64,000 bases of DNA from Selaginella moellendorffii (GCF_000143415.4 NW_003314297.1:969430-1033429), one strand, 5' to 3'. Shown: positions 20,886 through 38,581, counted from the stretch's first letter. Notes: generated by a model from the letters alone, not told the origin. Numbers and translations: made by a program.

Positions 20886-22330
20886 CTCTAGAGAAAACGA
20901 GCATCAACTTCAATAACTTTAGAAAATACATACCAGCCCAGGAAGCCGGTCGATCAGTAGATTGATGGATCGATGGAAGGGATAAATAGATAGCTTGGAG
21001 CTTGGCTCAGCCTCCAAAGCATTCCTGCCCAGAGCTCACATTGTTGTGGCTGCTGCTTTCACTCTCCTCTAGCTCCAGATGAACATGTTTAGGCAAGTGA
21101 AATATGTTGCTCTTGTATTGGCTGCCCTGGAGTAGGGTGCAACATACTTAGCGCAAATAGCGTTTGGGGGCAGCATAATGATCCTGCTGGGGGGTTATGT
21201 CTCTCAGCTCAAGGTCATTGCTTCCAGAAGGTCTGGAGCTAGAGGTCATGCTGGGCTTGAGCTGAGAAACATAACCCCTCATCAGGACCACTGTGGCATT
21301 TACAAAGGCTATTTGCGGCAACCTTAGTCCAGAGCAACAAATACAAGAGCAACATATTCACTTGCCTAAACAGACTCACATGTGTTGGATGACCAAGGAG
21401 GGGTTGGGAACAGTCACGAAGTACGTCGACATAGCCTTGCAGAAGCGCTTCTTGTACTGCTTGGGAGAGATATCAGTCGGTGGCCCTCCAAAGGCATTGA
21501 ACCACGTCTCCAGATGTTTGTCCCATGTGTATTGCTTCATAAAGTCAATGATCCCGAAGACAAGCTCATCTCGTTCTTCATCAATCCCAACGAGTAGCGA
21601 GTAGTCCATGACATTTACGCTCTACAAAACCAGTATAGAGAACTGGACGCGTGAAAAGAGAGAGAAAACAACAAAACAGCACTGCTTACCGCAAAGGAAT
21701 GAGGTGTCGTTCCATACCGTTCGCTCCAAAAGCTCTTGGCTTTGTTCTCGAAAGAAATGGGTGATTCCAACAGGTCCTGTTTTGGATTCTGAGTTGGAAC
21801 GAGAGCGCACTAAGCCTTTCAAATCATATGGCCGAGTAGCGTGTCTGCCATAGAGCAGATTCTTCATGACCATCAAATCCATGCGTCCCTCCTTGCCTCC
21901 CTTTATGATCACCTAGCGTCGAAAGCAACAATGAAACCAGAAATGAGCTTTCCTGGTGAATGACCAAACCTTTACCTCATACATCCCGAGAATCTTAGCC
22001 AGACAGGTCGGGCTGCCAGAGTCTAGAGAATCGAAGAAGTACTCCGGTGCAAACTCCAGGAAAGAGAGAAGCTCCGTCCTCGTCACTTGCTTCACGATGA
22101 ATCTGTCGTCCATCGGCTTGGCAAAAAAGACGACGTTCTTTCCACCCTGTGCTTCCGATTTACGGCACCCAAAGCTTACCAGCGCAGCATTTCTTCCACA
22201 GCGCATCGAAATGCCTGACCCTTGCTGCTATAAAGGATCTTCAACCTTCCCATCTGAAGAAGCGTCTTTGGAACTCTCCTTGGTGAGGACGCCTCCTTAG
22301 ATACTCTCTGTACGTTCCTTTTCTCTCCAC
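20886..22330 (-). pseudogene. Decayed tandem duplicate of the FAB1 3' end
   Basis: Collinear with about 23040-24400 including introns and 3' UTR; [36 protein letters not shown]; internal deletions, frameshifts and an insertion. Confidence 0.92.
21086..21372. mobile_element. 287-bp foldback (MITE-like) insertion
   Basis: Nested inverted arms: TGTTTAGGCAAGTGAA(A)TATGTTGCTCTTGTATT.. at both ends, CGCAAATAGC.TTTG, and a 35-bp inner stem 21179-21213 / 21256-21290; absent from the parental FAB1 sequence. Confidence 0.8.
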
Positions 22331-30133: not shown

Positions 30134-30162
30134 GAAACCTCCCTTCCTGGAAGGGAGGTTTC
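30134..30162. repeat. Perfect 14+1+14 palindrome
   Basis: GAAACCTCCCTTCC-T-GGAAGGGAGGTTTC. Confidence 0.9.
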
Positions 30163-31008: not shown

Positions 31009-34000
31009 ATGGCGTCGCCGGCGGCGTGGCAACAGCTCCCAGGGCAAGGATCGCCGTCGCAGGGGCACTGGCAAGCAGGCCAAATGCAGCGCGCCGTGTT
31101 TCCAGGCTACCCAGCGCCACCGCTCCAGCCGTATCGAGCGCCAAACCAGCTCAATTCTACTCCTCCGGTAAGCCTCACAGTCTAGAAATTCTCACTGGAA
31201 AGACGCGCGCTCTCGCGCAATCTCTCTCGCAGGGCGCCTCCTCGCCAAACCTTCCTCTCTATCAGCCTCCATCGCCATCTGGGCAAATGGGCTCGAGCCC
31301 CACGAATGCCACGGGCTACGCGCATGTAAGATGGGACGCTAGCGCTCCTCCGCCATCGATATTTGGAGCACGGCCAACGTCGCAGCCAGCGAGCTCTCCT
31401 TTGGTCCAGCCGCCGCCATATCCATCGAACCACCAGTGGATTCTTCCGGGACAACATCCCCAAAGGCCGTTTCTCTATCCACCGACTTTCTCTCTTCCAT
31501 ACCAGAGGCAAGAGCTCCATCCATCGTTCCGGCCAGTGGGCGATCCTTTCCAAGGTGGTGCTGCGTTTGGAGTGTGGGGTGGCAGTGGCATTGATCTTTC
31601 TGGATCAGCAGCACACCATGAACTTCCAGACTTCCATGCTCACAAAATGCCGGCTGCTGCTGCTGCTACTGGCGAAGACAAAAGTCACACTGCTGTGAGT
31701 GATTCTAAATCGGAGAATGCTTTTCCATTTGAAGTGTCTGAGGAAGATGCTTGGGCTGCGCATAAAACAGAAGATGGAGTCATTTACTACTATAATTCTG
31801 TTACAGGGGATTCTACGTATGAGAAACCCGCGGGCTTCAAAGGAGAGGTAACTTGTTTTCTTCTTAGTTGTGTGTACTATGTTTGCTTTTACGTTCAGGC
31901 TGGCAACGTCACGTCCCAGCCAACTCCAGTGTCCTGGTAAGTTCATCATGAGTTGCATTTGGACCGCAATTCTTATGGGAAATGTTTATTATTTTTCACA
32001 GTGAGAAGCTGAGTGGCACGGATTGGTCTCTGGTGACTACAAATGACGGGAAAAAGTATTACTACAATCCTAAAACGCAGGTACTGGGCAATTTTCTTTT
32101 CAGCTTTTGCAAAGTCATGACATCTTTTTCTTTTCCTGTAAGGCAACGAGCTGGCAAATCCCTGCAGAGATTGTCGACAAAGGGAAGAAGGACGCGTCTA
32201 ATGCTCCTGCGGCTTTGACTGGTGGGAGAGAAGCTAAAGGCACATCAAATACGCCGACAGCTCTTGATACAATAAAGAAGAAACTGCAGGAATACTCTGG
32301 CGGAATTGCGACAGTCTCAGAACCAGAGGTCGCGAAAGCCGGGGCAGATGATACGTCGAAGGACAAGTCAAAAGAAAACGCTGAAGCATCTACATCAGAT
32401 TCATCATCAGATAGTGAAGAGGAGGGTCCAACTGTAACAAAGGAAGAACGCGTCCGGCAGTTTAAGGTGCATTAGTGTAGTACTCTTTGCTCTTTTCTGT
32501 TTTTTTTTTTTTCTCTTGTTATTCCTTGTAGCTAATTGTTTCCTGTTGTGTTTTGTAGGAAATGTTGAAAGAGAAAGGGGTCGCACCATTTTCGAAATGG
32601 GAGAAAGAACTGCCTAAGATTCTCTTTGATCCTCGCTTCAAGGTACGCTTGGACCTCGGTCTGCTTTCTGTCTATTTTGGTTCTGTAGGCTATTGCTGGC
32701 CACACTGAAAGGCGTTCAATATTTGAGCATTATGTTCGGACAAGGGCAGAGGAAGAGAGAAAGGAAAAGAGGGCTGCACAAAAGTTGGCTGTTGAAGGTT
32801 TCAAACAACTCCTGGACGAGGCAAACTCATCCAATGTAAGACTCCTTTTGCTTTCTTCGTTATTCTTTTTTTCTAATACCCAGGGATTGTAGGAGTTTTC
32901 TGCTAGCACCACATATGAGAACTTTGCTAGCATTTGGAATCAGGATCCCCGTTTTGAAGCTTTGGATCGCAAAGAAAGGGAGACGCTGCTCAATGAAAGG
33001 TAAACTGAGTACTGCATCAGTAAAGCTTTTGTTGTGTGGATGGTGCAGATGCTAATTTGCACAGTCTTAAGTCTTGATCAGCCAGAGAAAGCCATGGGTT
33101 TTTCCTTATGTAGGTGAAATGTGTTCCACTTGCGATCGGTGACAGCAGGTATACTTTGTTTCTGTAATGGAAATCGAGTGTTTGGCCGAAGCTTCTGCAC
33201 CATCCACCTTTTCAATGATTACATTTCTAACTAGATGTTTCTGCAGGATCTTACCGCTGAAGAAAGCGGAGGAAGAACGTGCTAAAGCGGCCTATGCATC
33301 TGTATCCTCTGAGTTCCAGGCTATGCTGAAAGAGAGAAACGACATAACTTCTACTACTCGCTGGTCGAAGGTATTAATCTTGTATAAAAAGGTGTACGTT
33401 CGCTCAACTTGTTGGTGCAGATCAAAGATCTCGTGAGACATGATCCGCGATGCAAAGCTGTAAAACACGAGGATAGAGAGAACATCTTCAACAGCTACAT
33501 AGCAGAACTAAGGGCTGCTGAACAGGTAGTCGAGAGAGCTGCGAAAGAAAAACGTGATGAAGAGGTTAGCATGCACAGCTCGCAAGTTTTCGTCCTAAGT
33601 CTTGCAAGTTTCAACTGTCAGAACAAACTGCGGGAAAGAGAACGAGTGATGCGAAAGCGAAAGGAAAGAACCGAGCAGGAACTCGACAGAGTTAGAGCCA
33701 AGGCTCGCCGGAAAGATGCAGTGACTGGTTATCAGGCTCTTCTCACGGAGAAAATCAAAGATGCCGAGGTATGCTCTTGAAAATGCCATGCATCTTATAC
33801 TTTGATTGTTTTTGCCAGGCATCGTGGACAGAGAGCAAGTCAAAGCTAGAAAAAGACGCTCTTGGACGCGCTACAAACCCAGAGCTAGATGCTGCGGACC
33901 GGGAGAGATTATTCAGAGATCACGTCAAGGACCTGTACGAGGTAAACACTTTTCTCATACTGTTTCAGCTCATTGACGGTTGTTCTACACAGCGGTGTGA

Positions 34001-34277
34001 GAAGGAATACCGAGCACTCCTGGCAGAGGCTATAACGCTAGACGCGGCCTCGAAGCTGGCGGAAGACGGCAAAGACATCCTGGGCGTGTGGAGCGACGCC
34101 AAAGACATGCTCAACTCGGACCATCGCTACAACAGGATGCCCCGGCGAGCTCGAGAAACGTGGTGGCACCGCCATGCTCAAGAGCTCCAGCGCCGGCTCA
34201 AACCAAACGACAGGGACAAAGAAAAAGACGATCCAAAAGCCAGAGCTTCTGGTTCTTCATCCAAACGACAGAGATAA
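31009..34277 (+). CDS. PRP40C: Pre-mRNA processing protein 40C (2 WW + FF domains)
   Basis: WW domains WAAHKTEDGVIYYYNSVTGDSTYEKP and WSLVTTNDGKKYYYN..TSWQIP; FF domain [30 protein letters not shown] and further FF repeats. Confidence 0.93.
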
Positions 34278-34441: not shown

Positions 34442-35371
34442 TTAGCAGGTAACAGCGGTATAGACCATTCGTCCGTCCGCGGCTTGCTGCAAGCAGTAGA
34501 GCTGGTCCCCGATGACAAACATGTTTTGCGGCACTGCTGGAGGAGGTAAAGGATAGTTCGTCGTCTGATCCTGTGCCGATGGCTCCTCGCTTGCAGGATC
34601 GAAGTTCTTCAGGGACGAAAAGTCGAAGAGATCGTCCGGGAAGTTGTCGAGCTCGCTGTTGTTGTTGGAGGTCGGATCCATGGCTGCAAAGTCGTGTTCT
34701 TCGCTGAAGAAGGGTGTGTTGGCGGCGGCGGCGGCGGCGGAGGCGGCGGTGGAGGAGCCATGATCGTCCAAGTTCGTGGGAGGTAGTCCAAAGTTGACGC
34801 TGTTTTGCAAGAGCTGATGGTGGTCGAAGCCCTGGTAGCCGATGAGGTCCTCGTTCGAAGGTGGCGGAAGTGAAACCGAGAGGGGGATCGCTGCCAAGGC
34901 CGGTGGTGCGTCGAGAGCTTCGATCTTCGGGAGTTTGAAGCCTGTCTGTGGAAGCTCCAAGCCTCCTGGAAGCTTGAATTGGAGCTTTGGAGCCTTGAGT
35001 TTGAGCTTTGGAGCCTTTGATGGAACTTTGATGCCTCGATCGAGCTTTGGAACCGCCCTGGACGCGGGCTTGAGAGCTTTGGCTTTGGAGCTTTGGAGAA
35101 GAGTCGAGCCTTCCTTTGGGGAGGAGGAATCCTTGGGCTTGGATTTGGAGTTGATGTGGTACCTGGGATTGGAGACGTAATCGTTGCGCTTCTCGGAGGC
35201 GTAGATGCGAGGCGTCCCTCCTTCTGGCTCCATCTCCAGCATGAGCTCGGCACCGCAAAGGATGTGGATCTCGTCCGCCTTCTTCATCAGGCCGCAAGAG
35301 CGCTTGCGAAAGGTTGCGTTGCGATTGCTCTTGACGGTGAGGTACTTGATCTCGATCTTGCAGCGTCCCAT
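34442..35371 (-). CDS. Type I (M-type) MADS-box transcription factor, intronless
   Basis: MGRCKIEIKYLTVKSNRNATFRKRSCGLMKKADEIHILCGAE; no K domain; acidic C-terminal region. Confidence 0.9.
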   Translation of the reverse strand: MGRCKIEIKYLTVKSNRNATFRKRSCGLMKKADEIHILCGAELMLEMEPEGGTPRIYASEKRNDYVSNPRYHINSKSKPKDSSSPKEGSTLLQSSKAKALKPASRAVPKLDRGIKVPSKAPKLKLKAPKLQFKLPGGLELPQTGFKLPKIEALDAPPALAAIPLSVSLPPPSNEDLIGYQGFDHHQLLQNSVNFGLPPTNLDDHGSSTAASAAAAAANTPFFSEEHDFAAMDPTSNNNSELDNFPDDLFDFSSLKNFDPASEEPSAQDQTTNYPLPPPAVPQNMFVIGDQLYCLQQAADGRMVYTAVTC

Positions 35372-37216: not shown

Positions 37217-38581
37217 ATGAAGAAATCAGTAGCAACAGCAAGTCTGTATTGCTTTCTGGTATCCGGTATGGCGCTGCTGTTCTTTCGCAACTCGAGTCCA
37301 GGAACTCGGGAGCAAACCTCTCAAGAACTTTCACTGGGAAAGAACAGCAGCGTAGACGGCTGCAAAGGCAAGAGGGTCTTCGTCTACAATCTCCCCAGTG
37401 AATTCAACTCGCAGCTGCTCGAGCGATGCAACTCGGGCATTGTCAACTGGCTCAACTTCTGCGATCACGTCTCCAACGACGGATTTGGACAGCCAGTGCC
37501 ACAGGAGTTCGAGCCGCTGCTGGGAAAAGGGTGGTACAAGACCGACTCATACATGCTCGAGGTGATCTTCCACCGGAGAATGGCGAGCTACGAGTGCCTC
37601 ACAGACGATCCAGCTCGAGCAAACGCGTTCTACGTCCCATACTACGCCGGGCTGGACGCCTTGCACTACCTCTACAACCCCGGCGCCAACAAGAGCTTGC
37701 ATGGAGCCGGGGTGGCGGAGTGGCTCGAGAGGAACGCCGCGAGGAAGTTTTGGGATGAAGAACAGGGCGGCGGCGGTCGAGACCACTTCATGGTGATGGG
37801 AAGAACAGCCTGGGACTTTGGAGCTGGATCAAACCCGGACCTTGATCGCTGGGGGACGCCGATCCTCGCGTCTCCAAAGTTCTCGAGCATGAGCGTGCTG
37901 TTCGTGGAGAAGAATCCGTGGGATCCTCGTCGCCGGCAACACGCGGTACCATACCCGACTGCGTTCCATCCGGGCTCTCGCGGCGAGCTGGGCGATTGGA
38001 TCGCGAGAGTCCGGGGCTCGCGGAGGAGCTACTTGTTCGCGTTCGCGGGGGCTCCGCGGCCATCGCAGGAGGCGAGCATCCGGAGCTTACTGCTGGATCA
38101 GTGCGTGGGCGATGCGAGCGCGCGGTGCAAATTCGTCGACTGTGGTGAGCGGCGCTGCGGACACGATCCGGCGCCCATCGCCGCGGCGTTTCTCAGCGCG
38201 GATTTTTGCCTCCAGCCGCGCGGCGATAGCGCCACTCGACGATCCGTGTTTGATGCCATCGTCGCCGGGTGTATCCCGGTGTTCTTCCACGAGGACTCGG
38301 CATATTCTCAGTACACGTGGCATCTTCCGGACGATCCGCGTGGCTACTCTGTGTTCGTCCGTGAGGAGGAGATCAAGGGCGGGAATGTGAGCATCTCCGA
38401 GGTTCTTGGGAGGTTCCCGCGCGAGGAGGTGGCCGCAATGAGAGCGCGCTTGCTGGAGATGGCGCCCAGATTGATCTACGCGCGCGGGGGAGGGTCTGAT
38501 CGGCTGGAGGGTGATGCGTTTGATGTTGCGATCCAGCGGGTTTTGGAGGAAGCAGCCCATGGGTCGATCGCTCGAGGCTGA
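37217..38581 (+). CDS. GT47 (exostosin family) glycosyltransferase, xyloglucan galactosyltransferase-like
   Basis: VYNLPSEFN, WYKTDSYMLEVIFHRRM, FYVPYYAGLD, GRDHF, GRTAWDF, PYPTAFHP, FCLQPRGDSATRRSVFD, GCIPVFF. Confidence 0.95.
   Translation: MKKSVATASLYCFLVSGMALLFFRNSSPGTREQTSQELSLGKNSSVDGCKGKRVFVYNLPSEFNSQLLERCNSGIVNWLNFCDHVSNDGFGQPVPQEFEPLLGKGWYKTDSYMLEVIFHRRMASYECLTDDPARANAFYVPYYAGLDALHYLYNPGANKSLHGAGVAEWLERNAARKFWDEEQGGGGRDHFMVMGRTAWDFGAGSNPDLDRWGTPILASPKFSSMSVLFVEKNPWDPRRRQHAVPYPTAFHPGSRGELGDWIARVRGSRRSYLFAFAGAPRPSQEASIRSLLLDQCVGDASARCKFVDCGERRCGHDPAPIAAAFLSADFCLQPRGDSATRRSVFDAIVAGCIPVFFHEDSAYSQYTWHLPDDPRGYSVFVREEEIKGGNVSISEVLGRFPREEVAAMRARLLEMAPRLIYARGGGSDRLEGDAFDVAIQRVLEEAAHGSIARG

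Follow-up and report, generated by a model that had tools for sequence, protein, structure and literature searches.

Why a gene with short introns carries a single long one, and what a long inverted repeat within that intron might do to its splicing, are the questions raised by the PRP40C locus of the lycophyte Selaginella moellendorffii. The window analysed is a 64,000-nucleotide (nt) stretch of genomic DNA (GCF_000143415.4, NW_003314297.1:969430-1033429), in which PRP40C occupies positions 31009-34277 of the plus strand. Its introns 1 to 12 measure 65, 51, 65, 62, 92, 46, 57, 247, 50, 57, 50, and 51 nt, which bears out the observation of the initial annotation that intron 8 (33000-33246), at 247 nt, stands apart from the other eleven (46-92 nt). 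The same annotation had proposed that intron 8 holds a 35-nt cassette exon with a premature stop, looped out by an RNA duplex that possibly serves as a temperature-sensitive switch. Our analysis revealed that the intron is spliced from two alternative donors to one acceptor, and it raises the possibility that the duplex favours the productive donor.

Two donors and one acceptor in intron 8

Assembled RNA contigs from four runs (X1, X2, X8, and X12) of four studies were aligned to positions 32400-33900. Contigs record presence only: rare forms may drop out, and isoform ratios, sensitivity to nonsense-mediated mRNA decay (NMD), and regulation cannot be read from them. Introns 5, 6, 7, 9, 10, and 11 were removed at their exact modelled GT..AG borders in all four runs, and because the modelled introns were removed so cleanly, these contig sets behave as RNA. 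The features concerned are as follows:

32893-32999, plus strand: exon 8 (...RKERETLLNE), ending in phase 2 with AG; junctions 32835/32893 and 32999/33247
33000-33246, plus strand: intron 8, 247 nt, GT..AG, the sole long intron, the same in both haplotypes
33000-33005, plus strand: productive (upstream) donor AAG/GTAAAC, or donor 1; junction 32999/33247 in X1 and X8; U1 complementarity -6.8 kcal/mol
33001-33003, plus strand: TAA stop read if donor 1 is unused; AGG (32998-33000) then TAA, translated as ...LLNER and stop
33114-33148, plus strand: candidate 35-nt cassette; 3' boundary (donor) used, 5' boundary (TAG acceptor 33113/33114) without RNA support
33149-33154, plus strand: alternative (downstream) donor CAG/GTATAC, 98 nt from the acceptor and within the duplex loop; joint 33148/33247 in 4/4 runs; U1 complementarity -8.6 kcal/mol
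33227-33231, plus strand: likely branch point CTAAC, placed by consensus only, with its A at 33230, 16 nt upstream of the acceptor AG; predicted 0.88 unpaired
33236-33246, plus strand: shared acceptor TGTTTCTGCAG, the end point of both junctions
33247-33370, plus strand: exon 9, from the frame model and contig junctions

An extended form of exon 8 was present in all four runs: the sequence continues unbroken from exon 8 through 33000-33148 and is then joined at 33148/33247, with 98 nt skipped between GT..AG borders. The productive junction, 32999/33247, occurred in contigs of X1 and X8, and X1 also yielded a contig retaining 33149-33246. In X2 and X12 the long contigs (1872 and 2492 nt), from which the other introns are all gone, represent the extended form. 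The initial annotation had correctly named the donor CAG/GTATAC at 33148/33149, used in 4/4 runs, and had correctly expected a premature-stop isoform of intron 8 to arise through it. This isoform is truly made, as the joint 33148/33247 together with unbroken sequence over 32893-33148 was found in the four runs, and in RNA it reads AGG TAA.

The proposed 35-nt cassette exon (33114-33148) stood only in part. Its inclusion would indeed read AG/G TGA by translation, and its donor is used at 33148/33247, whereas the acceptor junction from 32999 to 33114 was seen in 0/4 runs, a presence-only result with which a rare form would still be compatible. Because donor 33149 is used and acceptor 33113/33114 is unseen, what occurs in intron 8 is use of an alternative 5' splice site, by which exon 8 gains 149 nt, and not inclusion of a cassette exon.

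Both donors are ordinary in their complementarity to U1, at -6.8 (33000) and -8.6 kcal/mol (33149) versus -5.3 to -10.9 kcal/mol across the gene. The downstream donor is slightly stronger toward U1, so that if the strength of the sites were all that counted, any advantage would go to the unproductive donor at 33149. The choice between them must therefore depend on proximity or structure and not on site strength.

The identity of the gene proved to be as initially annotated, since NCBI gives the identical 791-amino-acid (aa) protein the name pre-mRNA-processing protein 40C, and its best relatives across land plants are named alike. The gene is summarized in one line:

31009-34277, plus strand: PRP40C from ATG to stop, 13 exons, 791 aa, no internal stops, two WW and five to six FF domains

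An annotated gene of equal span and product length exists in S. moellendorffii GCA_000143415.2 (scaffold GL377601.1). Exon-by-exon Pfam searches gave WW and FF matches in exons 2, 4, 6, 8, 9, 10, 12, and 13, plus a WW_TCERG1 match. This order, with two WW domains ahead of several FF domains, is the PRP40C/TCERG1-type arrangement, and the protein groups with PRP40C and not with PRP40A/B. Exons were joined only for the frame and stop check, and relatives were sought with single exons or the database protein.

Plant NMD rules predict decay of a message whose stop precedes a subsequent exon junction by over about 50 nt or is followed by a long 3' untranslated region. In the extended form, 145 nt separate the TAA (33001-33003) from the next exon junction (33148), and four further junctions follow. 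Because its stop lies 145 nt before a junction, the extended form is a predicted NMD substrate by the usual plant rules, and we accordingly treat it as a predicted, rule-based NMD target in Selaginella. As judged from the reading frame, the extended message should encode at most a truncated WW-WW-FF-FF protein. Truncated isoforms ending in ...LLNER in other species were sought among 176 retrieved proteins, and none was found.

The predicted intronic duplex and sequence comparisons

The inverted repeat described in the initial annotation was confirmed: 33036-33049 and 33194-33207 are complementary over 14/14 base pairs (bp), and extension to 33036-33053 and 33190-33207 gives 17/18 bp around a 136-nt loop. 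Its arms are as follows:

33036-33053, plus strand: duplex arm 1 (GTGGATGGTGCAGATGCT), starting 36 nt after donor 1
33190-33207, plus strand: duplex arm 2 (AGCTTCTGCACCATCCAC), ending 22 nt before the likely branch point

When intron 8 was shuffled 2000 times with its dinucleotides preserved, no perfect inverted repeat longer than 12 arose, and separated inverted repeats of at least 14 nt occur at only about five loci in the 64-kb window. The duplex is beyond chance expectation. Its 14-bp stem was present in both the minimum free energy and the centroid structures of 32980-33270, with z = -3.56 relative to shuffles. The duplex encloses the downstream donor, as had been proposed, and dominates the predicted fold. 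Its suggested temperature sensitivity did not hold: in the predicted ensemble from exon 8 to exon 9, the pair probability of the stem was 0.91-0.94 at 10, 20, 25, 30, 37, and 45 °C, above 0.9 throughout, and the isolated duplex had a predicted energy of -30.9 kcal/mol. An RNA thermometer was rejected on this thermodynamic prediction of a stem stable from 10 to 45 °C.

The position of the stem agrees with that of yeast zipper stems, which are proposed to bring a donor close to its branch point: with the branch point taken from the sole good consensus match, CTAAC, linkers of 36 + 22 = 58 nt flank 14 perfect bp. When the stem is closed, about 75 unpaired nt separate donor 1 from the acceptor, a length that falls among those of the other introns (46-92 nt). 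The 136-nt loop contains the alternative donor, which is predicted to be mostly paired in a local hairpin abutting arm 2. In the same predicted fold, the last 9 nt of exon 8, 32991-32999 (CAAUGAAAG), pair with 33026-33034 (CUUUUGUUG) right before arm 1, which would place the productive donor within a hairpin that stacks on the long stem.

The arms also resemble nearby acceptors. A 10-mer of arm 1, TGGTGCAGAT (33041-33050), recurs at the intron 9 acceptor (33413-33422), and arm 2 (TTCTGCACCATC) is similar to the intron 8 acceptor and the start of exon 9 (TTCTGCAGGATC); these likenesses arise partly because CTGCAG is self-complementary. Rfam covariance models gave no match up to E = 1 in 32700-33500. 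No direct repeat indicative of a target-site duplication adjoins the arms, and no second copy of the arms or of intron 8 was found in the window. A copy of a transposon, such as a miniature inverted-repeat transposable element (MITE) or other hairpin element, was disfavoured for want of target-site duplications and of a second copy within these 64 kb.

The second haplotype of the locus (L002, scaffold GL377572.1) was found via the allele of the neighbouring MADS-box protein. Intron 8 showed 0 differences over 247 nt between haplotypes, whereas the other eleven introns showed about 15 events over 646 nt (about 2.3%) and the exons 11 over 2376 nt. At the intron rate, about 5.7 differences would be expected in intron 8 (Poisson p of about 0.003). 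The identical run containing it, 32989-33397 (409 nt), is the eighth longest in 20.8 kb; among the seven longer runs, 5/7 are almost fully open reading frames and the other two are 61-71% stop-free. The invariance of intron 8 is suggestive of selection.

No PRP40C from another Selaginella was found: an exon 2 word search gave nothing, and a representative search and an annotated-protein word search returned only the two S. moellendorffii alleles. The next relatives after these alleles show at most 61% identity. Small exon 13-like fragments correspond to 3'-end contigs or a partial paralogue in large-genome plants. Clustering at 90% also groups Selaginella PRP40C with a bacterial 'DUF1540' fragment of 44 aa and several metagenome peptides of 54 aa, most likely as an artefact of the clustering. 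A PRP40C-like partial gene lies between PPR and LRR-kinase genes at L003:10001-15437 and L007:3221-10333, in two assemblies of plants with large genomes (GCA_026651695.1 and GCA_047456115.1). Its 285-aa model has FF domains only and jumps from ...LLNER to the last FF domain, and it is probably a truncated PRP40C paralogue.

Orthologous loci of Marchantia paleacea, Calypogeia fissa, Riccia fluitans, Amborella, tomato, and Adiantum were compared. The three liverworts have the same 13-exon structure, and in each gene no intron is longer than the homologous one, which follows ...LLNER in phase 2:

Marchantia paleacea: intron 8, 1084 nt; other introns, 116-534 nt
Calypogeia fissa: intron 8, 1024 nt; other introns, 97-625 nt
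Riccia fluitans: intron 8, 1016 nt; other introns, 109-702 nt

This intron contains a block of about 280 nt (L008:4636-4919 in M. paleacea, L009:5162-5447, and L010:4732-5086) that is more conserved than exons 6-12:

Marchantia-Calypogeia identity: intron block, 84.6%; exons 6-12, 75.8%
Marchantia-Riccia identity: intron block, 92%; exons 6-12, 80.9%

The block has neither a long open reading frame nor an Rfam match; the Marchantia intron as a whole gave only a sub-threshold snR41 match, outside the conserved block. Invariant within it are ACAG/GTATAG and AAG/GTGATGA, plus three CTGAC branch-like motifs. In the three liverworts AAG/GTGATGA lies about 50 nt before the conserved donor, in the same AG/GTGA arrangement as at the Selaginella cassette acceptor. 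The helix CATGTGGT/ACCACTGA predicted by RNAalifold for the liverworts is invariant, and hence gives no covariation signal, and folds of single sequences did not reproduce it robustly. Two 11-bp inverted repeats found in Marchantia are missing from Calypogeia.

Comparison of the Selaginella intron with the liverwort block revealed colinear matches at three places: TTGTGTGGATGG, the 5' half of arm 1; AG/GTGA, the in-frame stop at the candidate cassette acceptor; and CAG/GTATA.TTT, the alternative donor. The first box and the donor are 113 nt apart in Selaginella and 118-119 nt apart in the liverworts. An unbiased nhmmer search of the window with a liverwort hidden Markov model did not find intron 8, and a targeted rank test against random 247-nt windows gave p of about 0.013-0.024. 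Kinship of Selaginella intron 8 with the liverwort block is thus only suggestive. A further step would be a shared liverwort-lycophyte module for unproductive splicing, more than 450 million years old, in which a donor ACAG/GTATA following an AG/GTGA in-frame stop was kept when Selaginella introns shrank to about 55 nt, and a 14-bp zipper then evolved for productive splicing; we regard this history as doubtful. The element was absent or unrecognisable in Amborella, whose intron measures just 97 nt, and likewise in tomato, in Adiantum, and in a moss-like metagenome contig. In that contig, a spliced PRP40C mRNA with introns 8-12 out, non-coding sequence stands directly upstream of exon 8 (L014:1-148) and looks as if it were a retained intron 7.

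Several other features of the window were recorded. A type I MADS-box gene of one exon (34442-35371, minus strand) lies tail to tail with PRP40C, 165 nt from the PRP40C stop codon; its alleles in the two haplotypes are unequal (309 versus 306 aa). A perfect 14-bp hairpin with a 1-nt loop (GAAACCTCCCTTCC/GGAAGGGAGGTTTC) is found at 30134-30162, in intergenic sequence about 850 nt upstream of the PRP40C start codon. Nested long inverted repeats at 21066-21372 (40 nt at 85%, 38 nt at 87%, and 16 + 14 nt perfect) form a hairpin of about 300 nt that could be a MITE or a hairpin RNA precursor. At 37272-37352, an 18-nt inverted repeat (94% complementary, 45-nt loop) lies within the coding open reading frame of a GT47 galactosyltransferase-like gene.

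A possible two-donor switch and its rivals

These observations can be combined in a switch between two donors, with the duplex acting as a zipper that favours the productive splice; we give this model an even chance of being correct. In the part shown by RNA, the upstream donor at 33000 removes all 247 nt and gives the full-length protein, and the downstream donor at 33149 removes only the last 98 nt and leaves 149 nt, placing a TAA directly after exon 8. In a genome with introns of about 50-90 nt, the donor most naturally joined with the branch point would be the downstream one. Formation of the 14-17-bp duplex (33036-33053/33190-33207) would loop out 136 nt including that donor. With the resulting zipper closed, donor 1 and the branch point would be separated by about 58 linker nt, so that the intron would effectively measure about 75 nt and the productive splice would be favoured. 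If the duplex were prevented from forming, splicing would shift to the unproductive form and PRP40C output would fall. Helicases, bound proteins, or early binding of U1 are candidate blockers of the duplex, and feedback of PRP40C on its own splicing is plausible.

Several points weigh against such a switch. The looped-out donor is still heavily used although the duplex is predicted to be nearly always formed; therefore looping out is at best partial in vivo, and the stem is not decisive alone. Covariation gives the duplex no support, as the haplotypes are identical there and the collections searched hold no orthologue from a second Selaginella species, and the liverworts have no equivalent of the strong duplex. 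The 409-nt haplotype identity, known from two haplotypes, could be a local gene-conversion tract. The branch point is placed by consensus only, and the RNA evidence consists of contigs, from which isoform ratios and NMD sensitivity are unreadable.

The rival that survives best holds that the duplex is incidental: the donors would compete by their own strength and their distance from the branch point, and the repeat would be a neutral leftover of a local inverted duplication or an old hairpin insertion. The lack of covariation, the fact that the looped-out donor is heavily used even though the predicted stem is very stable, and the liverworts without a duplex all speak for it, as does the arithmetic of the intron, since removing the 172-nt stem-loop from 247 nt leaves 75 nt, a normal intron size and that expected of an inserted stem-loop. 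Yet no target-site duplications flank the arms, neither arms nor intron have another copy in the 64-kb window, and a neutral insertion should differ between haplotypes like the other introns, not show 0/247. The stem, moreover, sits exactly in the functional window of a zipper stem. We consider an incidental duplex unlikely, though it deserves serious weight.

Considerably less probable is a two-step (nested) removal, in which the 98-nt piece would leave first, the extended form would be an intermediate whose ...CAG/G regenerates a 3' splice site, and donor 1 would then remove the 149 nt. AG precedes both donors, so that the second step would restore the exact productive junction; the extended form is abundant in contigs with the other introns all removed, as for a slow last step, and a 247-nt intron is unusual for this spliceosome. 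Against this stand a weak pyrimidine tract and poorly placed branch candidates before 33148, the dominance of the extended form among the assembled forms of two runs, which fits an end product better, and the loss of arm 2 after the first step, which would leave the duplex without a role. Inclusion of the 35-nt cassette (33114-33148) by splicing out 33000-33113 and 33149-33246, with skipping when it is looped out, is similarly improbable: a good pyrimidine tract and TAG acceptor precede 33114, inclusion would read AG/G TGA, the AG/GTGA arrangement is invariant in three liverworts (AAG/GTGATGA) about 50 nt before the conserved donor, and contigs lose rare variants, but the joint from 32999 to 33114 occurred in 0/4 runs and the contigs are unbroken from exon 8 to 33148.

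Relation to known systems

Unproductive splicing of splicing regulators is well established, as are long-range RNA pairings that choose splice sites; to our knowledge, plant examples combining the two are few. The two-donor switch is not a new mechanism but combines known unproductive splicing in a splicing-related gene with long-range intronic pairing. With 247 nt, two donors, and one 14-bp stem, the locus is a compact, easily mutated test case that could reveal whether long regulatory introns are tolerated in short-intron genomes with the help of zipper stems. A new and separate lead is the liverwort block, whose conservation suggests that PRP40C dosage in non-seed plants has long been under post-transcriptional control. 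The yeast founder of the PRP40 family bridges the two ends of the intron; if the ancient-module reading is true, a PRP40 family member would be dosed through an intron whose own ends need bridging. The passages on PRP40C/TCERG1 available to us (in the Arabidopsis PRP40C study, those on phylogeny and TCERG1) describe no intron-8 element, poison exon, or structure.

Poison exons that couple alternative splicing to NMD occur in splicing-factor genes, including those of SR proteins and SMNDC1, whose poison exon is conserved across kingdoms (PMC11357089). PRP40C resembles these genes as a splicing and transcription-coupling gene with a premature-stop isoform from an intronic region that may be unusually conserved. 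Those poison exons are cassettes, whereas the PRP40C event is an alternative 5' splice site with predicted NMD sensitivity. Long-range pairings also occur in Drosophila and human introns (Raker et al. 2009, PMC2724269; Kalmykova et al. 2021, PMC8052449), where complementary boxes separated by hundreds of nt either loop splice sites out or draw them together; these pairings were defined by conservation and compensatory changes, whereas the Selaginella duplex is known from the sequence of one species.

For the zipper stems of yeast (RPS17B/RP51B), approximation of donor and branch point has been proposed (Rangan et al., bioRxiv 10.1101/2022.07.22.501175, PMC12350175). The Selaginella duplex fits their positional criteria (36 + 22 nt linkers, 14 bp). 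The yeast stems aid the efficiency of one donor, whereas the Selaginella stem, a predicted fold, would also choose between two donors, and in a plant. A closer taxonomic parallel is the DEAD element of plant DRH1 helicase genes, a validated and conserved pre-mRNA structure that controls an alternative splice site and is sensed by the gene's own helicase (Burgardt et al., bioRxiv 10.64898/2026.01.23.701338). That element differs from the Selaginella duplex in having a known sensor and demonstrated conservation; the two are alike in being pre-mRNA structures in land-plant RNA-processing genes, and opening of the duplex would similarly lower output.

The thiamine pyrophosphate (TPP) riboswitch intron of Neurospora crassa NCU01977 offers a further precedent. 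There, alpha-alpha' pairing by the distal 5' splice site loops out the proximal 5' splice sites (Li and Breaker 2013, PMC3597705). This pairing brings the distal donor near the 3' splice site and yields a contiguous open reading frame, and in the unpaired state the non-productive proximal donors are used, as proven by mutation (PMC3597705). In NCU01977 a ligand-bound aptamer stem competes with pairing over about 530 nt, whereas in Selaginella no aptamer or ligand is evident (no Rfam match), the loop is 136 nt, and the role of the pairing is a proposed one. The two introns would nevertheless share the same layout: a long-distance pairing, a distal productive donor, and a looped-out proximal donor.

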